Origin: Lepidodermella squamata
Taxonomy: Eukaryota; Animalia; Gastrotricha
NCBI GenBank assembly: GCA_047495785.1
Contig: JBLDXI010000015.1
Span: 4,154,001 to 4,218,000, forward strand
Direction: 5' to 3'
DNA: 64,000 bases
The position numbers were made by a program, and so were the translations under genes. Of this stretch, positions 1,547-23,650 are shown one piece after another. Under the pieces are notes generated by a model. It saw nothing but the letters and a program-made list of their open reading frames with translations, made no database searches and had not been told where the DNA came from. The stretch's first letter is position 1. Every line of letters starts with the position of its first letter.

Positions 1547-2686
1547 ATGGAGCTTTATTTCAGCTTAATTTCAGCGCTGTTTTACGCGGATTATGCACTT
1601 GGCCGAAACCCAAACTGGAACATTTCAAGGCTTCAAACGCTACTGCAACAACGCCGGGACAAAGACCACATAACGGGGCGCGACCCGCCAAAATTGAATG
1701 AACAGGATGTTATATCGTTGAACTTGACCTTCCGAGCGATGAGTTTCATTTCATTGGATGAGATACACGAAACACTCACTGTTATGCCGGACTTCGAAGT
1801 CAAATGGCAGGACTTGCTCGTCAAATGGGACGATATCAGCGAATTTGATGGTATCGATGAGCTGACTATGAGCCCGCGAAACAACTGGGTGCCTAAACTT
1901 TTACATATGAACAACGCTGAAGACATTTATGCGACGTTGAAGTACGAAAAAGAGCTCGAAACGATACATGTGCTGTCTCATGGGGTCGTCAAATTCTTCC
2001 CACCTGTGCCAGCCATTACAACGGTTTGCCCGCTTGACTTTCTCCACTTTCCTTTCGATGAGCAGACTTGCATCTTCAAATTCGGCTACTTGGATCCATG
2101 TGATGACGTTGAATTCGGCAATGTAGCTATTGTGGTTGGTATTCCGTGGAAGAAAATCGAGTTCACATCGGAAAGCTCACAATGGTACGTGACTGGCAGT
2201 CAGGCGATTCTGACGAAGAAATGCGGTACTTTTGGCGATGCGGCCCAGTTCAGCATCACCCTAAAACGTCGCCCGCTTCAGTTCATCTACATTGCGATAA
2301 TTCCAATGGCTTTTCTCATGATGCTTCAATTAGCCACATTCGGAATTCCGGCGAGTGCCCCGGACCGGTCAGCTTATGCTATCACTTGCCAACTAGCGTT
2401 GGGGGTTCTTCAGACTAACATAGATGGTAAGATGCCAACAACTTCACAGTTGAGCTACATTGCCATAATTTTCACCATTCAACTCGGCATTGCGACTGTA
2501 ATCACGGTTTACACCTCAATTTCCTGCTATTTCTACAACAATTCGATAAAGAATTGTCACAAGCAGGAGCGAAAACTGTATCTGATAAAAGCCCTCAAAA
2601 TCAGCGATGTGACGTGCTTTTCTTTCTGTGCTCTCATCATTACAGTTTCTTCTGCGATTTTCATTGCGAAAATGCGAAGTGGTTGA
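1547..2686 (+). CDS. Cys-loop ligand-gated ion channel subunit, intronless (LGIC-1)
   Basis: Signal peptide, WVPKL loop A motif, Cys-loop CPLDFLHFPFDEQTC, pre-M1 LKRRP, four TM segments, very short M3-M4 loop. Confidence 0.93.
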   Translation: MELYFSLISALFYADYALGRNPNWNISRLQTLLQQRRDKDHITGRDPPKLNEQDVISLNLTFRAMSFISLDEIHETLTVMPDFEVKWQDLLVKWDDISEFDGIDELTMSPRNNWVPKLLHMNNAEDIYATLKYEKELETIHVLSHGVVKFFPPVPAITTVCPLDFLHFPFDEQTCIFKFGYLDPCDDVEFGNVAIVVGIPWKKIEFTSESSQWYVTGSQAILTKKCGTFGDAAQFSITLKRRPLQFIYIAIIPMAFLMMLQLATFGIPASAPDRSAYAITCQLALGVLQTNIDGKMPTTSQLSYIAIIFTIQLGIATVITVYTSISCYFYNNSIKNCHKQERKLYLIKALKISDVTCFSFCALIITVSSAIFIAKMRSG

Positions 2687-4978: not shown

Positions 4979-5435
4979 TTTTAATGAATCAGCTTAAATG
5001 TGAGGTGAATATTAGAGAACTGAAACTGCACTATATCTGATAAGCACCGGTATACCTTATTTCGTTACGCTACGACGATAATGCAAATTTCGATTAAATT
5101 TGCAGGTAAATTTGGATATTATTTATGAGCAGCATCGCCTGGTATGATTGACCTCACATGCGTCGCGGAATTGACCTCATGTGACTATTGCGAGGTCACG
5201 TGAATATATACGGATAATATTCAAATAATTGACACCACCTTATAAAATACGCCTCCAGAAATCTTGTCCAAATTGGTGACCGTGGAAACATAATAAAGCA
5301 TGAAATAATATTGGATTGGAAGCGCATTCTCATTAACTATCATCGCGAATGTCAATCAAATGGTGCGAACAAAGCAGCATTCGAATTTGCCTCTCGCAGC
5401 GCAATACCGAATTGCATCGCTTGATTTCAGATAAA

Positions 5436-6698
5436 ATGTCTGTGGAAATCTTCATCGCGTTTCTTTTCTTACAATCAGTCGCCAGTGTTAGTGGCGAAGA
5501 TACCGCGAGTGAAGCGTTCTACAACCAGGAGCAGAAGTTGAAGGACATCATCTATCAGAATTGCAGCTTGAAATCTCAATCGCGGCCAGTTGGCAATTTT
5601 TCGCATGCTTTACATGTTAACGTTTCACTGACAGCGTACGACTTCCGCGAAATAGATGATATCGAGGAAAGTCTATCGCTGATTGTTGAGCTATCGCTGA
5701 GCTGGTGGCATCCATGCGTTTCTTGGACTGATTTGCCGGAATTTCAAAATATCCTTCAGATCGAGGACGATGCGAAAAATTTCTGGCACCCTCGAATTAT
5801 TCATAACAATGCCATACAAGACGTCAACATTATTTCGAGGTTTATTCCTAAATTCAATTTAAAAAAAATTATTTTTATGTAAAATAGATTAACAAAATAC
5901 ACCCCGATTTACGTGAATTCCGATGGACTTTTGACTTGGAAAATTGTTGCAAATTTCCAATCTAACTGCGATTTATAGTAAGATTCCCGATTTCGCAAAT
6001 CGATTTGTAACTTCGATTTTTTTAGTTTAAAACAATTCCCATTTGATACCGAAGTCTGTTCTATCATTATTGAAAGCTATTCTGATACGTCATTTGTTTC
6101 GCTTGACTTGGACGGTCCGGGCATTTACGTCGCGGGGCCGATGGACGATTTCACTGACCTGACTGATATTTGGCTACTAACAGCTGTTAATGCCAGCGAA
6201 AGGACGCTTAGCTATCGAGGCAAGCCAGCGACGTTCGACCAGATTCATTTTACCTTCACGTTCCAGCGTAGGAGCGAGATGTACGTGTATGGGGTATTTA
6301 TCCCTACAATGTCTATGCTGATCCTGCAACTGAGTTCGATATTCATACCGCCCGACAACGGCGACAGGCCGGCTTATTGCATTACCGTTCTCTTGACATT
6401 TGTAATTTTACAAAATTTATACGATGATGCGCTGCCGAATTCCTCTGAGACGCCTTATATTGTCTATCTGATAAGTGGGCAAGTTGTCATTGGCATGGTG
6501 TGTACTTTCTACGTTCTTCTCATGTCACATTTCGCCAAAATACCGCGATATGCCAAAAAATTTAAATTTCCAATCACAGCAAAAAGCTGCATGTCTTTAT
6601 CGGCTGTTCGATTTGCTGATATCATCTTCTTTTTTATCATCACATCGATTTCTCTATCGTTGGTTGTGGTTGTTTTCGTTCTCATGCTAATGCCTTGA
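5436..6698 (+). CDS. Cys-loop LGIC subunit, 3 exons (LGIC-2)
   Basis: Exons 5436-5839, 5888-5977 and 6026-6698 with 48-nt GT-AG introns. Splicing rebuilds the Cys-loop CDLYLKQFPFDTEVC. M2 is DRPAYCITVLLTFVILQ. Confidence 0.9.
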
Positions 6699-7867
6699 CC
6701 TCGCCCTTGCTAGCAACCGTTATTGATCATCATTTGTATGATATGTTGTGTGTCTGCCGCACTAAACAAATAGTAGGTCGCTTGCTTTAATGACGTTCAT
6801 TTTAAGGAATTTATTGCTTCTTAACTCTCAATCAGGCTTGCTTTTTTGTAAATACTTGGAAATGTTTCATCGATCCAATTTTCAACGCGGTACATGTAAA
6901 ACAACCCGCCACTGTAATTTTTCCGCGCTAAACACATTTATCGAAAATCAATGGCTTCAATTAAAAGTAACTTGCTTTGACGAATAAAAAGTTCAGTAAA
7001 GCAGCGCAATTCCCAATTTTCAACACATCGGAAACTGTGGCTTTAATTTGTTATAACATGAATCTGCCAGCCATTACCGTGCTGGTTTTGCAAGTTATTT
7101 TGGCTGCCGCCCAATTCAACGGAGTGATAAATCAGGAAAATCTGCTTAAACAAATCCTGTACCCGCAGTGCTTGCTTCAGGAAAATACACGGCCGGTGGC
7201 GAACTTCTCGGACCCTTTAAAAGTTCGCGTTCGAATGCTAGCCTGCGATTTTCGATCGATTAACGATGTCGCAGAAAGCTTCTCGCTACTCATGGACGTC
7301 GTTTTTTCCTGGCAACATTCTTGTGCATCATGGGATAATCTCACCGATTTTCAAAATATCGATAGGATTCAAGATACAGCCAACAAGTTCTGGCTACCTC
7401 ATATCATTCATCGAAATTCAATGGGAGACGTCAACGCCCTATCAGAGTAAGCTACCTTAACAATTTTTCCCAATTCAGACTGTTGATATTTTAGCCTGTC
7501 TCAATATACCCCGATCTATTTGTATAAAAATGGAATTGTTCAATGGCAAATCGTGACAATTATGGAATCGAATTGCGATCTCAAGTAAGGATTTCCTTTT
7601 CAGAAATCTTAGAAATTTTCGTAATTACAATTAGGTTGAAGAAATTCCCGTTTGATGAGCAAATTTGCTCAATAATTCTGGAGAGTTATGCCGATTTATC
7701 GCTGATTGACTTTGAGGTGGATGGAGATGGGCTGTTCACCGAGAGTGATCTCGAGAATTTCGTCAGCCAAAGTGCGATTTGGAGACTTGCAGGCGTGACA
7801 GCTTCTAACGACACCAAAACTTACGTCGGCCTTAAGGGCAGCTACGATAGGCTGTACTTCACATTCA

Positions 7868-10800
7868 GCTGCGATTGAATATTAAATTTTCTGAGATTTC
7901 TTAATAAAAATAATTGTTGAGGAGTGTGCTCCCAGCTTATTAATTTCACATCTCGTTCGGCTTGGATACGGCATCAACTGTACACTACAACGGACTGTAA
8001 CCAGCATCGCCGAGATGAAGCCGGAATGCCTCCTGCTACTGTCGATGTTTGGCGCTGTGGTTATCCTATGGACTGTCGACTTGTCCTTGGCTGGGTCACT
8101 TCTCGCTTTTGACCTGGCAGGACAGACTAATTCAAATTCGAACTTGGCTGCTTCTACGCCACTCAAGGCGCGTGTGAATCGCGTGCCGTTTGAAACGTGG
8201 TGCCGTGAAATCAACGGTCAAGACGACTATAGTGTGCTCGGACACGACGGCAGGCCAACAGAAACCACGACGCATGAAGGTTTTTCGATCTTTTTTTGTT
8301 ATTTGGCACGCGATCCAAAACGTCAAATTACTCGCATGAGAGGTTTTATTCTGATTTTACTCCTGATTTCGGGGGTTCAGCCAAATCCGGGGCCCCCTGC
8401 TAGACACGAATTACCAGTCACACCAAATCATGAGTTGAGCGATGTAGTTCAGAAATTGAATTATGGGGACGAAAAAATGAAATTCATACACGCGGTTCAT
8501 TTCAATGTGAATGGCTTGACATGTAAACTGGAAAAATCTAGTATTTTCAAATATGAAGCCCTCGCTGAATTCTGCTCAGTGAATAAGCCAGATCTAATCC
8601 TAATATCGGAGACGAAAATTCCGGCGAATTCTACACCGAAATTTGTCGAGGATATGTTTTCAGACTATAGTTGCATTTGGGTTGGACGGGAAAATTCTGG
8701 CGGTGGCGGTGTAGCAATATTAGTCCGCAACAATTTGGTGATCAAAAATTATTGGTCAACCTCATCCACAATCGAGAACATTCACGCTTTAATCGAATCA
8801 CCAAATGGAATGACATTCACAGCATCCGTGATATATCGATCACCAACAGTAATGCCCAAAATTCCAGTCGAAGAACTAGACAGTGTTTTAGTTGATCTTA
8901 CTGCAAAATCGATGCATGTCAATCATCGATTTATAGGCGGAGATTTCAATTGGGACCTTCTCGATATCAAAGTTGACTCAGAATTACGAGACACATTCAA
9001 TACGTTTGATCTGAAACATAGCTTTCCACACTGCATTACTAGGCCAGCCGCTCTTACCATGCTCGACCATTTTTGGACCACTGAAAAGGAAGAAAACATC
9101 ATCTTATCGGGAACAATACATGGGCTTAGCGACCATCACGGGATCTTGTTAGTTATCACGGACCAGGGAACAAAAAGGTTTAAAAACCAAGTCGCAACCG
9201 AATCTAAGTATCGTAACTTGAAAGCTATCAAGGCAGACCAGTTCAATTATGAACTCGGTAAGGCACTAGGAAGTCCTAGCATCGAAACCGGAGATAGCTC
9301 ACAGAATTGCTGGGATAAAATCCAGACAGCGATTATTAAGGTTCTTGATAAACTTGCACCAGAAACAGTTAGAAAATCTACGCACCGCCGCACCAAACAC
9401 CGGCCAACTTTTCACTCACTTAGCAAACAACGAAAGGAACATCGAAAAATCCGGAAATCGCGAAGGGCCAAATGGCGCAGTAAAGTTACTGAGGCAGGGC
9501 GGGATTCCAAAAAAATCTGGAAGGTGGTTAATGAGTTTAGACCTAAGAAATCGTCCAACCACAACGACCCGAAGAATCAGGAATTTTCATTTAGGCATAT
9601 CACGCAAAGGGAACTATGCCTGGCATTCTCAAAAGTGAAAAACAAATCTACGACTGGTCACGATGGTATTCCGGAGTCTATTCTTAAACTAGCTTCTGAT
9701 GTTTTGAAACCTCATTTACTCGTTCTGTTCAATGTAATAATTGACAATAACACAATTCCTGAGCAATGGAAAATCGCAGTGGTTCATCCTCTTCACAAAG
9801 GTGGGTGTAAATCTGACGTAGGTAATTTTAGGCCTATTTCAATACTGTCAGCCATTTCCAGAACTTTTGAACGGTGCATTTCCATGCAAATTAAGGAACA
9901 TATCACCAATATCGAGTTTCTTTCGCCTAGCCAATTTGGTTTCAGACAATATCATTCTACCGACACATGTCTAGCGAAACTCAGTAATGATCTACGTAAG
10001 ACTCATGAACAAAGCAAAATATCGGTAGCTATTGCGATAGACTTGAGCAAGGCTTTTGACTCACTGCATCACCAAGGTGTCTATAACTCCTTAATTAGCG
10101 CAGGTTTCACAGAGAAAGCAGTCGGATTAATTCGCAATTACCTTGAGAACCGAAAACAGTATGTTTCGATAAACAATACCTTTTCAGACCATTTGCCTTT
10201 GCTCTACGGCGTGCCCCAAGGTAGTGTACTGGGGCCGCTACTTTTCACGCTATATATTAATGAGATGGCATCGATTCCCAGATTTGCGAAACTAGTCCAG
10301 TTCGCAGATGATACCACTGTATATCATTCAGGAAAAGATGTTGAAAAGTTACAACAGGAGCTTCAGTACGACATTGATCAATTGAGTGTCTGGCTCGCAG
10401 CGAACAGTCTAATGGTAAACGGGAAAAAATCGCAGATGATTGTTTTGCCAACCGACTACAACACCACTTCCCCACCTAAATTCGAAATCAAAATTGACGG
10501 CTGCTTGATCGGAACAACGTCATCACTCAAAGTCTTGGGGTTTACTCTTGACAATAAATTGGGATTTAAGGAACATTTAAGGGGGGTGAAAAACAAATCA
10601 CGTAGTGGCTTATTCGGACTGAGGATCGCTGCTAAATACCTTGATCGAAAGACTCTCAAACTCATGGCAAATGGCCTAATATTCTGCCACTTAATGTACT
10701 GCGATACAACTCTCTCGCAGCTGGCACCGACCAAGCTCAGCAAACTACAACGTCGCCAAGACCAGGCCGTAAGAATCATTTGCCACGCTCCGATGAACGC

Positions 10801-11427
10801 GGACCCTGCACCGCTAAGACAAAAACTCGGATGGCTGGATCTTGACGGAAAACGAAAAGTTCACCTGGCAACACTGATCTGGCGCTGCATTAATGGTGAG
10901 GCCCCGGTAGCCATAGCCAACTTCTTCAAACTTCGAACCGCACCAATGGCTTCTACCCGCAAACAAAACGCCCTCAAAGAACTCTCAAACATCCTAGAGG
11001 TGCCCAGGACTAAGTCAGCGATCATGGATCGGTGTTTGGCTCACCATGGATCGGTATTTTGGAACTCTCTCCCCGACCACATCCGCACATCCAAAACTGC
11101 CGACCAATGCAGAAACTTGGTTTACCGTCACCTGCTTACACAACAAAAAGAACTTACCTCAAATACCGCCGCCTGAAACCAGAAGACAAGAGCATCTGCA
11201 TTTTATATTTTTATATTGATCCTGCTACAAACCAACATTCATCACAATTGTTTTCTTTGTTGAGCTATCTTCTTTTTTATACATATAAGTTACATGATGT
11301 TTTATAACTATCTAATCTTGTGTACAGTTTAAATCGAACCTAACTAATCCATTGTCTTTTTTTACAGCTGAGCTTTCCAACTTTTTCTAAAAACGGATGA
11401 ATGGCTCATAAATAAATAAATAAATAA
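7868..11427 (+). mobile_element. Apparently full-length non-LTR retrotransposon (CR1/L2-group-like LINE)
   Basis: Flanked by an ATTCA direct repeat (7863-7867 and 11428-11432), ends in a (TAAA)n tail and carries one intact APE+RT ORF. Confidence 0.93.
8015..11176 (+). CDS. LINE polyprotein: APE endonuclease + reverse transcriptase
   Basis: APE motifs HFNVNGL, ISETK, GGGVAILV, GGDFN, LDHFW and SDHHGI. RT motifs FRPISILS, QFGFR, AIDLSKAFDSL, GVPQGSVLGPLLF and QFADDT. 2A-like LLLISGVQPNPGP upstream of APE. Confidence 0.95.
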   Translation: MKPECLLLLSMFGAVVILWTVDLSLAGSLLAFDLAGQTNSNSNLAASTPLKARVNRVPFETWCREINGQDDYSVLGHDGRPTETTTHEGFSIFFCYLARDPKRQITRMRGFILILLLISGVQPNPGPPARHELPVTPNHELSDVVQKLNYGDEKMKFIHAVHFNVNGLTCKLEKSSIFKYEALAEFCSVNKPDLILISETKIPANSTPKFVEDMFSDYSCIWVGRENSGGGGVAILVRNNLVIKNYWSTSSTIENIHALIESPNGMTFTASVIYRSPTVMPKIPVEELDSVLVDLTAKSMHVNHRFIGGDFNWDLLDIKVDSELRDTFNTFDLKHSFPHCITRPAALTMLDHFWTTEKEENIILSGTIHGLSDHHGILLVITDQGTKRFKNQVATESKYRNLKAIKADQFNYELGKALGSPSIETGDSSQNCWDKIQTAIIKVLDKLAPETVRKSTHRRTKHRPTFHSLSKQRKEHRKIRKSRRAKWRSKVTEAGRDSKKIWKVVNEFRPKKSSNHNDPKNQEFSFRHITQRELCLAFSKVKNKSTTGHDGIPESILKLASDVLKPHLLVLFNVIIDNNTIPEQWKIAVVHPLHKGGCKSDVGNFRPISILSAISRTFERCISMQIKEHITNIEFLSPSQFGFRQYHSTDTCLAKLSNDLRKTHEQSKISVAIAIDLSKAFDSLHHQGVYNSLISAGFTEKAVGLIRNYLENRKQYVSINNTFSDHLPLLYGVPQGSVLGPLLFTLYINEMASIPRFAKLVQFADDTTVYHSGKDVEKLQQELQYDIDQLSVWLAANSLMVNGKKSQMIVLPTDYNTTSPPKFEIKIDGCLIGTTSSLKVLGFTLDNKLGFKEHLRGVKNKSRSGLFGLRIAAKYLDRKTLKLMANGLIFCHLMYCDTTLSQLAPTKLSKLQRRQDQAVRIICHAPMNADPAPLRQKLGWLDLDGKRKVHLATLIWRCINGEAPVAIANFFKLRTAPMASTRKQNALKELSNILEVPRTKSAIMDRCLAHHGSVFWNSLPDHIRTSKTADQCRNLVYRHLLTQQKELTSNTAA

Positions 11428-12446
11428 ATTCATCTTCCAACGCAAATCCGAAATGTTTGAACTGTCAATATTTTTGCCAACTATGTGCATGATGTTTCTG
11501 CAACTGAGCTCTGTTTGGATAGACCCGGCCGATTCGCAGCGACCAGCCTACGGAATCACAGTTCTATTGACTTTCATCATATTGCAAATACTTTACGACA
11601 GCGATCTGCCGCCATCTTCCAATACGCCGTACGTTGTCTACATGATCAGTGGCCAAATTTTTATCGGAATGTTATCTACAATCTACGCTTTGTTAACTTG
11701 TTGCCTAGCGACTAATGAAACATTCAAAAGAGAGATCGCTGTACAACCTATTTTTAAATCGTCAAAAATCAGTATAATCAGACTAATTGATATCGTAGTT
11801 TACTTCATATTTGGCTTCGCTTCAATTTTAATTGTAGTCGTAACTTTTTCCCTCATGCGAAGCTGATGTAAAATTATTGTCCAGAAAATTCGTCCTCAAT
11901 TTTTTATTATTCACAAGGTGTTTTTCGATATTGTGCTCGTGCGAAGACGCGTCTTTGTTTTACAGTTCATCTGATGATATAGCCAGAATAATAAATTCAG
12001 AATGCCTGATTGGAAAAACAAAGAAATCGGGTTCTATTTACTGACATTAGTCCACTAATTGCTTATATCAGACTTGAGCAATCAGTGTTTGCCAGGGCGC
12101 CAGTATAGCACGTTCCCGGCTGATCTTATTCGTTGTCTCAGTGATTTCATCGATCGAAAAATATCTTGCAAATTAATTTGCTGCCTTATCGCCGCTTCCC
12201 CTTGTTGCTACGACCGCGAGAAACGTGCCATATTAAACAAGCCAGAGCTGATCAATGATTCGAGTTCATTAATATTTTGCTCATCCCCCATGACCCTAGA
12301 GTCTATGACACTTTGCGTTATTGAATATCCAGCAGTTGTCAATATTTAAAATCATTAATATTTGATTTTATAGATTTTATAGTTGTGAGGCTTGTTACGT
12401 GTGTAAATGATTTGCACATGATTAACCTTCAGTTTTCATTGTAGCC

Positions 12447-13701
12447 ATGCATTACCCTTGGTTAGAGGTTATCGCCTCGTTATTCGCCGTGAATATTCAT
12501 CTGACAGGCTCAGATTTCACGCCAACTGCAATCCAGGAGCAGAAGCTCAAGGAAATCATCTACCCGCAATGTTTTCTAACAGAAAATACAAGACCGGTGA
12601 TGAATTTCTCGGAGCCTTTAATAGTCAGGGTTCGCATGATAGCCTGCGACTTTCGGTCTATAAATGATATTGACGAGGAATTTTCGCTATTGATGGACGT
12701 TGTTTTCTCATGGATGCACCAATGCGCGACCTGGACCAATCTGTCCGACTTCAGCAATGTTGAACGAATTTCAGATACAGCTAGCAACTTGTGGCACCCG
12801 TCGATTATCCACCGTAATTCAGTGAATGACGTGAACGAACTGGCCAGGTAATTTAGTTTAAAATTATATCGATTGGTATTCAAAAAAATTATCTTCAGCT
12901 TGGCTGAAACAACACCGATCTATCTATACAAAAATGGCCTAGTTCAATGGCAAGTTGTAACGATAATGGAGTCGAACTGCGATTTACAGTAAAATATTCT
13001 TTTAATTAAGAGATAGAGAAATTAATTTTTTGTCTAGCTTGAAAAAATTTCCTTTCGACATTCAAAATTGCTCGATCATTCTGGAAAGCTATGCAGATGA
13101 GTCGCTGATCGATTTGGTGATAGATGGCAATGGGTTGTTCACAGAGAGCGAATTGGAAGATTTTATCAGTCCAAGTGCGATATGGCAACTCCTGGACATT
13201 AGCGCGTCTAATGCCTCGCAAACATATGTTGGCCTCAAAGGCAAGTACGACCGGCTGTATTTCACGTTCACGTTTAAAAGAAAGCACGAAATGTTTGAAC
13301 TATCGATATTTCTACCCGTCTTATGCATGATGTTCCTGCAATTGAGTTCGGTTTGGATCGACCCAGGCGATTCGCAACGACCGAGCTACGGAATAACCGT
13401 TCTATTGACATTTATAATTCTGCAAATTTTATTCGATAGCTCTCTACCGCCTTCGTCCGATACGCCCTATGTTGTGTATTTGTTGAGTGGGCAAATTGCC
13501 ATTGGCATGCTATCGACTATTTACACCCTGGTTACGTGTACTTTGGCGACAAAGCGCGGCTTCCAGCGAGAGATGAAAATTTGTTGCTGCCGTAAGAGGA
13601 AAATCACTGTAATTCGGTTACTGGATTGCATTGTATTTTTCATGTTCGGAACTGCGTCTATTCTCCTAGTGCTAATTACCTTCGCCCTGATGCGCAGCTG
13701 A
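12447..13701 (+). CDS. Cys-loop LGIC subunit, 3 exons (LGIC-4)
   Basis: Exons 12447-12847, 12899-12988 and 13038-13701. Cys-loop CDLHLKKFPFDIQNC. Closest paralogue of the LINE-disrupted gene. Confidence 0.9.
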
Positions 13702-14283: not shown

Positions 14284-15576
14284 ATGAAAACCAAACCGCA
14301 GCCTCACATCACCGCATTTTTTCTGGCAATTTTTGCTCAATTCGTTATTGGGAATAATATGTCATATTTCAAAACTGAAGAGGATGAGCTGAAAAGTTGG
14401 CTATACGAACGATGCAATTTGCAATCGAATTCCAGACCAGTCAGAGCCTACAATGAAGTTTTTATAGTTTCAACTCGGCTGATTCCCTACGACTTTCGTG
14501 AGATTGAAGATCGGGAGCAGTACTTTTCGATGCTGGTCGAGATCGACTTCAGCTGGCACCACCCGTGCGTTAGATGGGGAGATACTAACGAAACTAGTAG
14601 CTATTCAGATATAACCCGGCTTCAAGATAACGCCAACAAATTCTGGCGGGTTTTACTCACCCACATAAATGCAGTCGAAGACCCGAATTTTCTTGTAGGG
14701 TAAGAAAAAAGATCGGGCTCAATTTTGCTCTGAATTTAAATATTTCAGCCAAGCAGAAAAGACACCGATGTACATCTACCCAGATGGAACTATGACTTGG
14801 CAAGTGGTCACTTTGATCGATTCTAACTGCGACATGGAGTGAGCTGATATTTCTTCAAATTTATGTGAATATTCCCAAATTTTACAAGCAGATTGCGGCG
14901 ATTTCCGTTTGATAGCCAGAAATGTTCGATAATCCTAGAAAGTTACGTCGAATCCTTTCTAATTCGGCTCCAGCTTAATGGAACTGGAATTTTGATGCAG
15001 CAAGCTTTAAACAAATTCATCGATGCCAGCCAAATTTGGGAGTTGAAGAGTGTTAACGCGACCACCTCAAAAATGATCTACGCCGGCTGGCAGGGTGACT
15101 ACGACCGGGTGGTATTTACATTCAGCTTTCAGCGAAAAGTTGAAATGTACATAACCACGCTGTTCCTGCCGTCATCTTGCTTGATGGTACTACAACTCAG
15201 CGCAGTTTTCATGCCTCCGAAAATTGCCGAGCGATCGTCTTACAGTATAACGAATTTATTGGCTTATTTTATCCTTCAATCGGTGATTGTTGAATCGGTG
15301 CCAAAATCTTCGGAAACGCCCTACGTTTCGCTGTTCATCTGTGCTCAAATGATGATAGGATGTCTTTGTACTATTTACACGCTGGTGTCATGCGACCTGG
15401 CGAGGCGGAAAACGTTCAAAAAACCGGTGGACATTCATTATTGGAAGGGCTCGAAATGCAAAATATCACTCATTCGATTACTAGATTTTGTCATTTTTGG
15501 ATACTTTGCGTTCATGACTGTTGTATTGCATATTGTCATTTTTGTGCTAATGCAAAAAAGCGACTCAGATCGGTAA
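14284..15576 (+). CDS. Cys-loop LGIC subunit, 3 exons (LGIC-5)
   Basis: Exons 14284-14699, 14749-14838 and 14892-15576. Cys-loop CDMELRRFPFDSQKC. M2 is ERSSYSITNLLAYFILQ. Confidence 0.9.
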
Positions 15577-16178: not shown

Positions 16179-17318
16179 ATGGAGCTTCATTTCAGCTTCA
16201 TTTTTGCGCTGGTTTACGCGGATTGTGCTCTTGGTCGAAACCCTAACTGGAGCTTTACAAGACTTCAAACTCTCTTGCAACAACGCCGGGACAAAGCCAA
16301 CATAACAGGACGCGACCCGCCAAAATTGAATGAATGGGATGTGATATCGCTGAACCTGACCTTCCTAGCGATGAGTTTCATTTCTTTGAATGAGATACGC
16401 GAAACACTCACTGTTATGCCAGACATCGAAATGAAATGGCAGGACTCGTTCTTCAAATGGGACGATATCAAGGAGTTTGACGGTATCGATGAGCTGACTA
16501 TGAGCCCGCGAAACAACTGGGTGCCTAAACTTTTACATATGAACAACGCTGAAGACATTTATGCGACGTTGAAGTACGAAAAAGAGCTCGATGCGATACA
16601 TGTGCTGCCTCATGGGGTTGTCAAATTCTTCCCACCTGTGCCAGCCATTACAACAGTTTGCCCGCTTGACTTTCTCCGCTTTCCTTTCGATGAGCAGACT
16701 TGCATTTTCAAATTCGGCTACTTGGATTCATGTGATGACGTTGAATTCGGCAATGTAGCTATTGTGGTTGGTATTCCGCAGAAGAAAATCGAGTTCACAT
16801 CGGATAGCTCACAGTGGCACGTGACTGGCAGTCAGGCGATTCTGACGAAAAAGTGCGGTATTTTTGCGGATGCGGCCCAGTTCAGCATCACCCTGAAACG
16901 CCGCCCGCTTCAGTTTATCTACATAGCAATAATTCCAATGGCCTTTCTGATGCTTCTCCAATTGGCGACCTTCGGAATTCCGGCGAGTGCCCCGGACCGG
17001 TCAGCTTATGCTATGACTTGTCAACTAGCGTTGGGGGTTCTTCAGACTAACATAGATAGTGAGATGCCAACAACTTCACAGTTGAGCTACATTGCTATAC
17101 TTTTCACCATTCAACTCAGCATTGCGACTGTCATCACGGTTTACGCCTCAATTTCTTGCTACATCTATAACAATTTGATAAAAAATTGTTGCAAACAGGA
17201 GCGCAAACTGTATCTGATAAGGGCCGTCAAAATCAGCGATGTGACGTGCTTTTCTTTCTGTGCTCTTGTCATCACATTTTCGTCTGCTATTTTCTTCGCG
17301 AAAATGCGAAATGATTGA
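16179..17318 (+). CDS. Cys-loop LGIC subunit, intronless (LGIC-6), recent duplicate of LGIC-1
   Basis: Same 379-aa length and highly similar to 1547..2686. The flanks are also similar (about 15960-16178 vs 1300-1546, and 17335-17460 vs 2705-2830). Confidence 0.93.
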   Translation: MELHFSFIFALVYADCALGRNPNWSFTRLQTLLQQRRDKANITGRDPPKLNEWDVISLNLTFLAMSFISLNEIRETLTVMPDIEMKWQDSFFKWDDIKEFDGIDELTMSPRNNWVPKLLHMNNAEDIYATLKYEKELDAIHVLPHGVVKFFPPVPAITTVCPLDFLRFPFDEQTCIFKFGYLDSCDDVEFGNVAIVVGIPQKKIEFTSDSSQWHVTGSQAILTKKCGIFADAAQFSITLKRRPLQFIYIAIIPMAFLMLLQLATFGIPASAPDRSAYAMTCQLALGVLQTNIDSEMPTTSQLSYIAILFTIQLSIATVITVYASISCYIYNNLIKNCCKQERKLYLIRAVKISDVTCFSFCALVITFSSAIFFAKMRND

Positions 17319-17797: not shown

Positions 17798-19071
17798 ATG
17801 ATCCGTTATCTCTTAATATTTATTGTTTTGATAATTTTGTATCGATTGCCGCCGTCTTCGTGTCAAAACGATCAGTACCTAGCTCTTGAAGACCAGCTAA
17901 AGTATTGGCTTTACTCGAAATGCAGCCTAATGTCGAAAACCCGGCCTGCAAGCAACTATTCAGAGCCGCTATTTGTCTCAGCTAGGGTTGTGCCCTACGA
18001 CTTCAGGTCAATCGTCGATCGTGAGCAGAGTTTTTCGCTATTCGTTGAAATTGACTTCTCTTGGAGGCATCCATGCGTATCTTGGGGCAATACCGAGGCG
18101 ACGAAGAAATACGCCGATATTTTCCGAATCCAGGATACGGCTGATAAATTTTGGCGGGTTCAGTTGATGCACAACAATGCTCAGAGAGACGCGAATTTCC
18201 TATCAAGGTGAGATTGCTAAATCGGCCGGAATGGTTCCGCTGTAATTTCATGATTTTAGCATAGCTCAGCATACCCCGATGTACATCTATAAAGATGGAC
18301 TAATGATATGGCAAATCGTGACTATTGTGGATTCTAATTGCGAAATGAAGTGAGTATTTTTTTGTAAATTTTGAAAATTCGAGAAAATTCTTTCGAAGCT
18401 TCCGAAAATTCCCATTCGACCGGCAGACTTGTTCGATAATTTTTGAAAGCTACGTCGAATCGTTTAACATTCGACTGATTCTCGATGGAGCCGGCGTTCT
18501 TTTGCAGAAGGACATGTTGGAATTTGTCAACCCAGCCGATATATGGCAACTGGTCAGCACAAATGCTTCAACTTCGAAACAGACTTACGCCGGCTGGGAG
18601 GGTGACTACGACCGCGTTTATTTCACCTTTGTTTTCAAGCGAGAATTCGAAATATACGTCACTTCAATTTTCATACCTTCTTTTTGCTTAATGATCTTAC
18701 AACTAGCGACTCTACTTCTTCCACCTCGTTTCCCAGAGCGATCTTCCTATAGCATAACCGTACTGCTAGCCTTCGTTATTTTGCAATCTGTTATCGGCGA
18801 TTCGTTGCCTAAATCGTCAGAAACTCCTTACATATCTATAATGATCAGTGGGCAAATCGTTATTGGCATGATAATGACAATTTACTCTTTGATCTCTTGC
18901 GATTTGGGTAGAAGACCAATGTATGCTGCGCCGATTAAAATTAAGCTGACTACTTTCTCGAAATTTCAGCGCATTTCATTAATTCGAACCATAGACATAA
19001 TATTTCTCGGAACGGCTTCTTTCATATCCGCGGTTTTCAATATTACTTTATTTGTTCTAATGCTAATTTAG
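17798..19071 (+). CDS. Cys-loop LGIC subunit, 3 exons (LGIC-7)
   Basis: Exons 17798-18207, 18260-18349 and 18399-19071. Cys-loop CEMNFRKFPFDRQTC. Confidence 0.9.
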
Positions 19072-19163: not shown

Positions 19164-20426
19164 ATGAGGCTTTTAATTGCTATTATACTACTAAGGTATT
19201 CTGTCTTGTGTATCGAAGCCAGTGATGCCTTTGTACCTGAGGAGCAAGAGTTGAAAGACTGGCTGTATAAGAAGTGCCACTTATTCGATAACACGAGACC
19301 GAAGCAGAATTTCTCCGAACCTTTGGTAGTCCATGCCAGTGTTGAGCCTTACAGTTTTAGGGCCATCAAAGACCGCGAACAGAGCTTCTCAATGCTGGTC
19401 GAGGTCGATTTCTCGTGGAACCATCCGTGTGTTGGCTGGGGATATGGCAATGATAGCAGTCGCTTCTCGAATATTCTCAGAATTCAGGATGTGGCCAGCA
19501 ATTTCTGGCGCCCGCAAATTTTCCACAACAACGCGATGCAAGATGCAAATTTTCTATCTAGGTAACTGTTTTATAACAAACTAATCTGTCGATAATTGAC
19601 TGATTTTTTCCAGCTTAGCAAAATACACCCCGATGTACATCTATTCCAATGGGCAACTTATCTGGCAGATAGTTTCTATCATCGATTCCCATTGTGAAAT
19701 GAAGCATGTTACGATTATTTTTTTCCTGCAATTTTTAAGCTTGATTTTTTTGTTAGTTTTCGGAAGTTTCCTTTCGACAAGCAGGTGTGCTCTATCATTT
19801 TCGAATGCTACAGCGAGTCATTCGTCACGACCTTACAAGTCTCGGGTGAAGGCGTTGTAATGCAGGAAAGCTTAGCTGACTTTGTTAGCCCCGCTGATAT
19901 CTGGCTTCTAACGAACATCAGCACTTACACAACAAAACAAAAATACGCTGGCTGGGTCGGGGAATATGACAGGATTTACTTTAATTTCACATTCCAACGG
20001 AAATATGAGCTGTATATTACGAGCATCTTTCTACCCTCATTTTGCTTGATGATTCTGCAAATTTTTGGCGGATTGCTGCCGCCTAAAGAGCCGGAAAGAG
20101 CGTCTTACAGCGTTACAGTCTTGCTTTCGATTATCATCTTGGAAACTGTCATCAGCGAGTCGCTTCCATCATCGTCCGAGACTCCCTACATTGCAATTTT
20201 CATCAGTGGGCAAATCGCGATCGGAATGTTGTGCACAACCTATTCATTGGCATCGTGCCAATTGGCTCAGATGTCTAAATTCAAGCGCATAGTACCGTAT
20301 CCGTGCTGTAAAAATCGAAAAAGTGGCATCAGAATTATTCGACTTCTTGACTTGCTCTTCTTCAGTGGTATCAGCTTGATTTGTGTCGTTCTAGTGCTTT
20401 CAACTTTCGGCCTAATGCTTTTCTGA
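19164..20426 (+). CDS. Cys-loop LGIC subunit, 3 exons with a GC-AG second intron (LGIC-8)
   Basis: Exons 19164-19561, 19614-19703 and 19757-20426. The second donor is GC at the position homologous to the GT donors of the paralogues, giving CEMNFRKFPFDKQVC. Confidence 0.82.
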
Positions 20427-20681
20427 ACTCGGCAATAAAACGTTTTGGTGCGGTGATGAAATAGGTCAGTAATAACTTATATCGTCGCGTTGACCTTTCG
20501 TATATTACACTCAAAGTGCTGCGAAATAAAAAAGAAGACCCCTGAAATCTGAAGATTTATTTAAGATAGCAGCTGATAATACAAGCTGACGGAGGAAAAA
20601 AATTAAGCTGGCGGAAATTCATATTTCTGCGAAAAATTGGCGTGTTTAACCAGCGACGAGCTTCATTTTACTGAAAAACTG

Positions 20682-22076
20682 ATGATTTTGATTTTGATTT
20701 ATTTTCAAATATTCATTGCCCTTGGCTCGAATGAAATCACTCCGAATCCAGTTCTGACGAAAGCTGATGAAAATGAGACGACTACAGCTACCACGGTCGT
20801 GTCTTTAACCACGAAATCCGCGCCTCTTATCGCGAAGGACCAAGGCACTAGACCCAGCAGTCAGAGCTCCGAACCTTTCATCAGCCAAGAGCAAGAGTTA
20901 AAAGATTTGTTGTACGAAAAGTGCAAACTGCTGACAAATTCCAGGCCTGTTCTCAACTATTCGCAACCGCTGGTTGTAACGTCTTCGATAGAGCCTTACA
21001 GCTTCCGTTCGATCGAGGATCGGGCGCAAAGTTTCTCCATGCTGATCGAAATCGACTTCAAATGGAAACATCCTTGCATCGCGTGGGGGTTCGGCAACGA
21101 AACGAGTAAATTTGCAAATGTTCTTCGTATTCAGGATCAAGCTCAGAAATTTTGGCGGCCGCAAATATTTCACCAGAATTCAATGGCCAACGCCAATTTT
21201 CTGGCAGAGTATGCCCCTTAATTTGTTTAATAACGCTTTTAATTTTTAATTAATTAATTAAATAATTAATTTTTTACAGAATCGCCAAGCATACACCGAT
21301 GTACATCTACTCGGATGGGACCATGATTTGGCAAATGGTTGCGAACGTTGATTCCCAATGTGAGATGAGGTTAGTTGTTTTAGTTTTTTCTGGCATACAT
21401 TTTTTTGTTTACTTTCAGCTTCCGGAAATTTCCATTCGACTCTCAAACTTGTTCGATTGTTTTTGAGAGCTACGTCGAGTCATTTTTAGTTAGCATAATC
21501 ATCGATGGCCAGGGAATTACGATGGAAGACAGTTATCAGGACTTCGTCGAGCGGTCGGAAATTTGGACGTTAATCGCTACGAATACCAGCCAAACGAAGC
21601 AAAAATACGCCGGTTGGGTGGGCGACTACGACCGTGTTCGCTTCACATTCACATTTTCGCGAAAATTCGAGATTTATTTCACGAGTTTGTTTCTCCCGTC
21701 AGCCTGCCTAATGCTGCTCCAAGTTAGCACAGGCTGGTTACCGCCGAAATCAGCCGAGAGATCGACCTACAGCATTACGGTTCTGTTAGCTTTTGTCATC
21801 TTGCAGTCGATTTTCGACGAATCTCTGCCGCGATCCTCTGAAACTCCACTCATTTCGATGTTCATCAGCTGTCAAATCGGCTTCGGCATGGTCTGCACGT
21901 GCTACAGCCTGTTCTCGTGCAACCTGGCTAGCGCTAAATTGTTCAAGAAAAAGGTCGGCTTTAAAGGTATCCGCGTGACTGCCATTCGAGTTATTGACTT
22001 TCTGTGCTTCGGAATCATGGGCATAGTCTCTGTCATGGTTTACCTGGTTACATTGTATTTCATGTTAAAAAAATAA
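20682..22076 (+). CDS. Cys-loop LGIC subunit with Thr/Ser-rich N-terminal extension, 3 exons (LGIC-9)
   Basis: ATG at 20682 opens a signal peptide. Exons 20682-21208, 21280-21369 and 21419-22076. Cys-loop CEMSFRKFPFDSQTC. Confidence 0.9.
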
Positions 22077-22510
22077 ATCCGCAGCTAATTTTTCATCAAC
22101 AAACTTTTTTAAGAAATATGTGAATTATTTATAAAAATTATAGATACAATTTAGTATCAAAAAACCAAATTCGCTTGATTTGAATTATATTTTGAACGCA
22201 TTCGGCTAGGTCAATAAATTACATTTTTTTGCCGATGACGACATTCAGTTGTCCCATGAATTTTCTAGCTCCGGCGACAGAAAAAAAATTGACCGATTTC
22301 CGAAATGCCTACCCATCATCATTGTCTAGAAACCACTTGATATATGACCGACTCTATAGACGCAAGCAAAAGAACTGTCTCCAATTATTTTCGGTTCGAT
22401 TGTTGTTCGTGCGCGAATTGATTGCCACCCGCGCAATTTCGCGACGCCTCGCACACCCCGATCAAAGATCAAATCCCGATAGCGGTTATTGTTGTAAAAA
22501 ATCTCTCAAA

Positions 22511-23650
22511 ATGATGTTGGCTTTTTATGCTGTTTTCTTAGCAGCTGCCGAGGCTGGTGATGTCAGCAGCCTGCGAAATATGCTAGCCGAGCGACGACGG
22601 GACACCTCCCAAGATAGCGCTGCTGTGGTAAACCTGAAATTCCACGCCGCCCATTTCATCGACATTGATCAGTTCGACGAAGCTCTGAGAATCGTCCCTG
22701 AAATGACATTAACCTGGAACGATGATCTTTGGCGATGGGATAATATATCCACCTTCTCCGATATCGAATCCCTTGCGGTCAATCCTGCAATGTCCTGGTA
22801 TCCGAATATCGTGCACCTAAACAATCCTGAGGACATTTATTCGCTAATCAAACAAGAAAATGCCATCCTTATGAATGAGAACGCTCGAACGATGACAATT
22901 GCTAAGGACGGATCAGTTGAGTGGCAGTTGGCCGGCGCCATTCTGGCTACAAAATGCGACTTGGACTATGCTAATTTCCCGTTCGATATTCAACCCTGCG
23001 AATTTTCGTTCACTTTCCTCGAGCATCCAAGCCGGGCAACCTTCGGTGAGGTCTCAGTGACAGTTGCGGACGATTTCGTCGCGAAAACTCGGTCTTGGAA
23101 ATTTCACCGCGTCGAATTTTTCGTTCAAAACGGGACGAAAGATGGCCGAATTACGAATAAGCAAGTCGTCACTGTTCGGCTGTACACTCGCCGAGTAGCC
23201 GGTGTCTACATTTACGGAATTCTATTTCCTGCCACTGTTCTAGCCCTAACTGAACTCGCCAGTTTCGCCATGCCGGCTGGATCGCCAGATCGGGCGGCTT
23301 TCGCAACTAGTGTAATGCTGACCTTCGTTATCATGAAAGATGGCATGGCCGCGCGAATTCCTCGAAATGCCATCATGAACAAGACTTGTCTAGCCCTGGT
23401 GATGCAGCTCGTAATGTCGACAATTATCGCAGTTTATTCGGCTGTGTCTTACCAAATGCACTTCAGATTGACGAGACGCTGCGACGGTCGGCGAAAATCG
23501 GAAGTTTTAACCGCGAAACGTCGCCTGGCTCTGGTTGATAATGTCATTTTTATGATTTGCTCCATTCACCTCGCTTGTATCATGCTGGTTTTGGTCCATC
23601 TCGGGATGACCAGTGATGAGGAAGAGCAGCCTCAAGTGCGCGAATATTAA
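22511..23650 (+). CDS. Divergent intronless Cys-loop LGIC subunit (LGIC-10)
   Basis: ATG at 22511 begins the signal peptide MMLAFYAVFLAAAEAG. WYPNI motif, Cys-loop CDLDYANFPFDIQPC, four TMs. Closer to LGIC-1/6 (shared H.NN.EDIY motif). Confidence 0.9.
   Translation: MMLAFYAVFLAAAEAGDVSSLRNMLAERRRDTSQDSAAVVNLKFHAAHFIDIDQFDEALRIVPEMTLTWNDDLWRWDNISTFSDIESLAVNPAMSWYPNIVHLNNPEDIYSLIKQENAILMNENARTMTIAKDGSVEWQLAGAILATKCDLDYANFPFDIQPCEFSFTFLEHPSRATFGEVSVTVADDFVAKTRSWKFHRVEFFVQNGTKDGRITNKQVVTVRLYTRRVAGVYIYGILFPATVLALTELASFAMPAGSPDRAAFATSVMLTFVIMKDGMAARIPRNAIMNKTCLALVMQLVMSTIIAVYSAVSYQMHFRLTRRCDGRRKSEVLTAKRRLALVDNVIFMICSIHLACIMLVLVHLGMTSDEEEQPQVREY

Follow-up and report, generated by a model that had tools for sequence, protein, structure and literature searches.

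Does a retrotransposon that lands between the ligand-binding and channel-forming parts of a receptor gene give rise to a new soluble binding protein, or does it simply break the gene? This question is raised by a stretch of 64,000 nucleotides (hereafter, the window) from contig JBLDXI010000015.1 of the gastrotrich Lepidodermella squamata. The window carries a gene for a Cys-loop receptor, or pentameric ligand-gated ion channel (pLGIC), here called gene B, whose third and last exon is interrupted by a long interspersed nuclear element (LINE). An earlier note on this DNA had proposed that the insertion produced, in one step, a secreted protein resembling the acetylcholine-binding proteins (AChBPs), a dominant-negative subunit, or simply a fresh null allele. 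The structural part of that proposal held up in our analysis, and the null allele is the best supported of the outcomes that it named, while nothing beyond the open reading frame (ORF) itself speaks for a secreted product resembling AChBPs or for a dominant-negative one. Judging from the sequence, gene B is one paralog of a hugely expanded family that has most likely been turned into a null allele by a recent insertion. The coordinates of all features are given in Table 1, and searches of the genome refer to 121.2 Mb in 151 contigs.

A young LINE in the last exon of an intact receptor gene

The insertion in exon 3 of gene B is 3,561 bp long. We set its ends by alignment to copies on six contigs (C54, C28, C13, C1, C17 and C126). 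By this comparison, the element starts at 7869 (CTGCGATTGAA...) and stops at 11429 (...GGCTCAT(AAAT)5). The sequence common to three full-length-type copies begins at CTGCGATTGAATATT..., and seven copies share the end ...GGCTCAT(AAAT)5, with flanks that diverge beyond it. The genome holds at least 47 matches, many of them 5'-truncated at differing points, with 98-100% identity. The ORF of the element matches the endonuclease family Exo_endo_phos (PF03372; 2.3e-9, residues 162-374) and the reverse transcriptase (RT) family RVT_1 (PF00078; 2.2e-33, residues 599-845). The features of a non-long-terminal-repeat (non-LTR) retrotransposon are all present, namely APE and RT in one ORF, dispersed copies with a common 3' end and variable 5' truncation, a repeat tail and a target-site duplication (TSD). 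That a LINE interrupts a receptor gene, as the earlier note had stated, is thus borne out by its APE and RT ORF, its TSD, its tail and the element ends that it shares with other copies.

By its architecture, with a single ORF of ~1,050-1,094 amino acids in ~3.6-3.7 kb, the element appears to be RTE-like. RTE-type elements are likewise ~3.2-3.9 kb long and frequently 5'-truncated, and have one ORF of ~1,000-1,100 amino acids in which APE is followed by RT, with no separate ORF1. However, the TSD of SR3 is 10-12 bp, against 3-4 bp for the gene B element, and the latter, unlike the RTE-type element with which it was compared, carries a hydrophobic leader at its N-terminus as well as a 2A-like site (NPGP). 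The leader is a signal- or transmembrane-like stretch at the ORF start (MKPECLLLLSMFGAVVILWTV..., within 8015-8400 of the window). About 120 residues into the ORF, ahead of APE, the sequence reads ...LILLLISGVQPNPGPP, a 2A-like ribosome-skipping motif in which Q replaces the usual E.

The 123-bp deletion listed in Table 1 is private to the gene B copy among the copies compared, and the copies on C13 and C4 hold a comparable extra segment of ~121-131 bp at the same point. The canonical element would therefore be ~3.68 kb long, with an ORF of ~1,094 codons. With its ORF open despite the deletion, the gene B copy may still be autonomous. Over about 3.4 kb, 4 substitutions separate it from the copies on C54 and C28, and over 2.7 kb a single one separates it from that on C13; across all copies compared, the range is 0-4 substitutions in up to 3.4 kb (99.8-100% identity). 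Given that the element is ~99.9% identical to other genomic copies, this result indicates that the insertion is very young.

The junctions are equally informative about the way in which the element arrived. When the two flanks are joined through one TCA, they read ...YFTF-I-FQRKSEMFEL... and agree in number of codons with all six paralogs, whose sequence at this site is FTF(T/S/V)F(Q/K/S)R(K/R/E)xE. From this agreement we infer a clean target-primed insertion in which no host sequence was lost. The extra G at the 5' junction may be an untemplated or cap-derived nucleotide, and the serine codon at the break is composed of the target A at 7867, this G and the C at 7869 with which the LINE opens. 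Other full-length copies begin at CTGCGATTG, with T before it; at the 5' junctions of the full-length copies on C54 (L005) and C28 (L006), T precedes both, as against G in the gene B copy.

We also characterized the state of gene B before the insertion, searching databases exon by exon. Exon 1, which ends in a GTAAG donor at 7447, matches the Pfam ligand-binding domain (LBD) family Neur_chan_LBD (PF02931; 9.6e-9, 35.4 bits, profile positions 3-93), and the upstream part of exon 3 matches the same family with 26.9 bits over profile positions 131-210 of 216; both scores are above the gathering score. Exon 2 is flanked by an AG acceptor (7493-7494) and a GT donor (7585), and the two introns, of 48 and 50 nt, are of the GT..AG type. 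The Cys-loop, C-DLKLKKFPFDEQI-C, is split over exons 2 and 3 and has the form C-x13-C with FPFD. On the far side of the LINE, positions 11435-11863 are collinear with M1-M4, the membrane segments, of all paralogs (72% identity to paralog C), and the alignment shows an M4-like hydrophobic end conserved between gene B and its paralogs, followed in gene B by its native TGA stop (11864-11866). The family Neur_chan_memb (PF02932) matches this part with 21.9 bits (E 2.4e-4), which is below its gathering cut-off of 28.1 bits; paralog C aligns across M1-M3 to alpha7 and 5-HT3A chains in the PDB (E about 3e-12).

Uninterrupted, gene B would comprise 381 codons. Both of its halves have an open frame with neither frameshift nor stop and canonical splice sites, and the gene keeps all residues conserved in the family, including the C-x13-C and FPFD of the Cys-loop, the pre-M1 motif and the M1-M4 motifs. 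Its nearest paralog, gene C, is 61-83% identical to it in amino acids per exon. Between the two genes, pN amounts to 0.20 for the ectodomain and 0.19 for the membrane part, and pS is saturated (0.76-0.81), which indicates that long-term purifying selection acted on both parts. Given this signature and how little the LINE differs from its relatives, gene B was probably functional until very recently.

The site of the cut and the two orphaned halves

To place the break in the receptor fold, we used human alpha7 nicotinic acetylcholine receptor chains in the PDB, which align to exon 3 of paralog C (E about 3e-12), the stretch KYDRLYFTFTFKRKHEMFELSIFLP included; the top match is a solved alpha7/dupalpha7 chain. 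The break in gene B corresponds to 'TFTV|TMRRR' of alpha7, in the last third of strand beta10, with 5-6 residues to go to the end of the basic pre-M1 motif. The earlier note had placed the insertion exactly at the junction between the ectodomain and M1, at the end of beta10. The LINE is indeed near this domain border, but the break falls 5-6 residues earlier, inside beta10, so that the cut removes the final 5-6 residues of the strand, including the conserved F-x-R-K/R pre-M1 basic motif. By profile coordinates (to 210/216), 97% of the LBD is left.

Upstream of the break, the truncated ORF runs through ...GSYDRLYFTF, whose last full codon ends at 7866, and then reads AGC TGC GAT TGA, that is, S-C-D-stop. 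This agrees with the claim that the 5' end of the LINE supplies an S-C-D-stop. All three frames meet stops within 12 codons in the first 40 nt of the LINE; thus, a nearby stop was certain beforehand and is unremarkable. The AATAAA that had been pointed out in the 5' untranslated region (UTR) of the LINE is also in place, and it is common to all full-length copies. AATAAA occurs 1.17 times per kb on the strand of gene B, which gives a chance of ~7% of finding one within 60 nt. Among the paralogs, C, D, E and F carry AATAAA 8-49 nt beyond their stops, and it is therefore probably the poly(A) signal used in L. squamata. Given the stop, the AATAAA with its GT-rich tract and a layout like that of paralogs C-F, a short ectodomain-only mRNA from the gene B allele is plausible, if unproven. 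Its product, as had been claimed, has a signal-like N-terminus and no transmembrane segment; the LBD, which had been called complete, reaches only position 210 of the 216 in the profile.

Downstream of the LINE, the native internal Met at 11453 opens a 137-residue ORF that is collinear with M1-M4 of the paralogs and encodes these segments only, as had been noted before. Lacking an evident promoter, this half is in all likelihood silent. A protein consisting of M1-M4 is unlikely for the same reason, and also because the ORF lies directly behind the LINE tail with its AATAAA and its stops in all frames. Rescue of gene B by splicing out the LINE was ruled out by inspection, since the tail has TAA in all frames and there is no in-frame acceptor before M1.

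Null allele or new binding protein

The event at gene B is of a known kind, an ordinary exonic LINE insertion, and nothing so far indicates that a soluble protein with a binding function has arisen. LINEs that insert into exons are well known to create null alleles, as in the L1 cases reviewed in PMC4859970 and in cases in the mouse (PMC6466679). The gene B insertion resembles these cases in that a non-LTR element lies in sense orientation in a coding exon, with a TSD, a premature stop and poly(A) signals and a truncated product. It differs from them in its gastrotrich host, its RTE-like, (AAAT)n-tailed element and its very short TSD; moreover, with hundreds of pLGIC paralogs beside the one that was hit, no phenotype is expected.

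We propose that a currently active RTE-like retrotransposon entered the last exon of gene B very recently by target-primed reverse transcription, and that this took place in the germ line or in a clonal lineage, which would make the insertion heritable. The element would have parted the ectodomain-coding section from the channel-coding section, adding a stop after three foreign codons as well as poly(A) signals near this stop and at the LINE tail, and the outcome would be a loss-of-function allele of this channel subunit. If the allele is still transcribed, it would yield a fragment of 240 residues with the signal peptide and the ectodomain without the end of beta10, which is more likely to be degraded, retained or inert than to work as a soluble pentamer. 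Because the genome contains hundreds of pLGIC genes, the loss of gene B would probably be nearly neutral. Read in this way, the locus would be a clear-cut, classic example of a gene mutated by the insertion of an active LINE, in an animal phylum that has received little study, and the insertion could serve to mark ongoing retrotransposition and gene turnover in a massively expanded receptor family.

Several observations weigh against a simple null allele. The truncated ORF is tidy: it opens with the signal-like N-terminus, covers 97% of the LBD profile and stops 3 codons past the break, with the AATAAA and GT-rich tract 25 nt further on and a 3' layout like that of paralogs C-F. The truncated product may be stable and even useful. 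The cut falls within ~6 codons of the domain border, for which post-hoc arithmetic gives a chance of ~3% for a random hit in the 381-codon coding sequence. As for zygosity, the assembly holds the filled site only, with the flanks of the insertion occurring once each at 100% identity; no second haplotype or empty site was found in it, the other matches of the flanks being paralogs at 68-77%. In the contigs of JGI metagenomes, the empty-site junction and a 31-mer specific to gene B each gave 0 matches. A word search of protein collections with exon 3 of gene C and exon 1 of gene B gave no match, and an exact look-up of six ORFs of the window found none on record; these collections do not include this species. 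As a control, a conserved NPRL2-like ORF of the window found only one protein, 59% identical, and the empty results for genes B and C are therefore uninformative as to expression.

Could the fragment nevertheless be a secreted, soluble ligand-binding ectodomain, born in one step through a transposon? The same 240-codon ORF, with its hydrophobic N-terminus, its LBD to 210/216 and the stop and polyadenylation signals provided by the LINE, would speak for this, as would the host, which is probably spiralian, given that natural AChBPs are known in Spiralia (molluscs and annelids). Like an AChBP, the fragment would combine a signal peptide with a pLGIC-type ectodomain of ~220 residues and have no membrane helices. 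However, AChBPs are products of stand-alone, long-evolved genes; they keep the whole of beta10 plus a C-terminal tail, and their Cys-loop is hydrophilic. The predicted gene B fragment stops 5-6 residues short of the beta10 end, without the F-x-R-K/R motif, lacks vicinal cysteines in loop C and retains the hydrophobic, channel-type FPFD Cys-loop on what would be its membrane-facing surface. In channels this loop packs on the membrane domain, and, without engineering, receptor ectodomains with an FPFD-type loop have low solubility and form pentamers poorly. In addition, the insertion is too young for adaptation. We thus regard an AChBP-like birth as highly improbable. A fragment that is retained in the endoplasmic reticulum and co-assembles with the paralogs, lowering their surface expression, seems slightly less far-fetched, though still improbable. 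Recognition between pLGIC subunits is driven largely by the ectodomain, close paralogs, such as gene C with its 61-83% identity per exon, adjoin gene B and may be co-expressed with it, and altered natural subunits such as human dupalpha7 (CHRFAM7A) act as dominant negatives. As in CHRFAM7A, a structural mutation would have yielded a partial subunit that might interfere with intact relatives; however, dupalpha7 loses part of the ectodomain and keeps the membrane domain, whereas the gene B fragment is the reverse, an ectodomain only. It has no membrane anchor, and any effect that it had would more likely be deleterious than adaptive. Even taken together, the soluble and the dominant-negative outcomes seem to us quite unlikely, and we would give very little credence to the full chain in which the allele is transcribed, polyadenylated at the AATAAA of the LINE, and secreted as an ectodomain that binds the ligand of the family or poisons the assembly of paralogs. 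If it were true, it would catch in the act a one-step origin of AChBP-like soluble proteins or decoy subunits through a transposon at a domain border. A truncated ectodomain that is made and active would offer a specific and testable route by which soluble proteins of the pLGIC ectodomain type, AChBP among them, could originate.

Two further explanations concern the allele itself. The published assembly of L. squamata (122 Mb, 157 contigs, 43% GC) was obtained from one animal of a commercial culture after MDA amplification (PMC11660948). If the genome searched here is that assembly, the insertion might be a chimera of amplification or assembly, or a heterozygous or private mutation of one animal or culture line; the locus is present as one haplotype, and an insertion as recent as the near-identity of the LINE implies is probably polymorphic. 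However, both element ends exact, a TSD and flanks in perfect collinearity are not what a chimera would leave behind, and the assembly paper describes 83x HiFi coverage with no chimeric contigs detected (PMC11660948). A heterozygous or private allele would be compatible with a fresh null allele and no replacement for it, and we consider an artefactual or unrepresentative allele a very poor explanation. Poorer still, and extremely improbable in our view, is that gene B was dead or dispensable before the LINE arrived. It is true that the family is huge and turning over by tandem duplication, and some Neur_chan_LBD matches elsewhere in the genome hold stops. However, the intact frames, splice sites and family motifs of both halves of gene B contradict this, as does a pN far below pS in each. 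We therefore retain the fresh null allele as the explanation of the locus.

The receptor gene array around gene B

The window is eukaryotic, non-human DNA with a GC content of ~42% and short GT..AG introns of 46-56 nt. Within its first 24 kb, 10 pLGIC genes are arranged head-to-tail over 22 kb (1547-23650), as listed with the other features in Table 1.

Table 1. Features of gene B, of the inserted LINE and of the neighbouring receptor genes (positions in the window)
Feature	Position	Strand	Description and evidence
Gene B exon 1	7058-7446	+	ATG 7058-7060, signal-like hydrophobic N-terminus (MNLPAITVLVLQVILAAAQ...), first half of LBD; translation and paralog collinearity
Gene B exon 2	7495-7584	+	beta5-beta6 and first Cys of Cys-loop; tblastn collinear with six paralogs, 34-83% identity
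Gene B exon 3, upstream part	7635-7867	+	Remaining Cys-loop, beta7 to most of beta10, end ...YDRLYFTF; Pfam, paralog and alpha7 receptor alignments
Upstream TSD copy	7865-7867	+	TCA (possibly TTCA); same TCA at 11430-11432
Extra G at 5' junction	7868	+	In neither target nor other LINE copies
Non-LTR retrotransposon, RTE-like layout	7869-11429	+ (sense to gene B)	146-nt 5' UTR, single ORF, 3' UTR, (AAAT)5 tail
TGA ending truncated receptor ORF	7876-7878	+	240 codons, after S-C-D
AATAAA in LINE 5' UTR	7903-7908	+	25 nt after new stop, then GT-rich TTGTTGAGGAGTGTG; candidate poly(A) signal
LINE ORF	8015-11176	+	1,053 amino acids: hydrophobic leader, GVQPNPGP 2A-like site, APE endonuclease, RT
123-bp in-frame deletion (41 codons)	9566-9567	+	Between APE and RT domains; relative to C54 and C28 copies
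(AAAT)5 LINE tail	11410-11429	+	Contains AATAAA, and TAA in all three frames
Gene B exon 3, downstream part	11430-11866	+	TSD copy 2 (11430-11432), pre-M1 FQRKSE, M1-M3, M3-M4 loop of ~20 amino acids, M4
pLGIC gene, intronless	1547-2686		More distant
pLGIC gene A, three exons	5349-6698		
pLGIC gene B, three exons	7058-11866	+	Interrupted by LINE
pLGIC gene C, three exons	12447-13701		
pLGIC gene D, three exons	14284-15576		
pLGIC gene, intronless	16179-17318		More distant
pLGIC gene E, three exons	17798-19071		
pLGIC gene F, three exons	19164-20426		
pLGIC gene G, three exons	20637-22076		
pLGIC gene, intronless	22229-23650		More distant

A genome-wide search with Neur_chan_LBD yielded 2,530 first-look candidates, of which 150 were scored; these 150 accounted for 163 matches. 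These numbers put the size of the pLGIC family in the hundreds and indicate that it is massively expanded in L. squamata. An Rfam scan of the window gave no match, and the SL1 spliced-leader sequence was not found in the genome search, which speaks against the nematode origin at which atlas matches had hinted.

The array also contains traces of its own history. The first two intronless genes (1547-2686 and 16179-17318) encode 379 amino acids each and are 88% identical, and they lie 14.6 kb apart with three-exon genes between them; this pair points to the duplication of a segment that contained genes of both kinds. In the three-exon subfamily, the M3-M4 loop is very short (~20 amino acids), as in prokaryotic pLGICs, and Q occupies the aligned position at which alpha7 has the -1' Glu.

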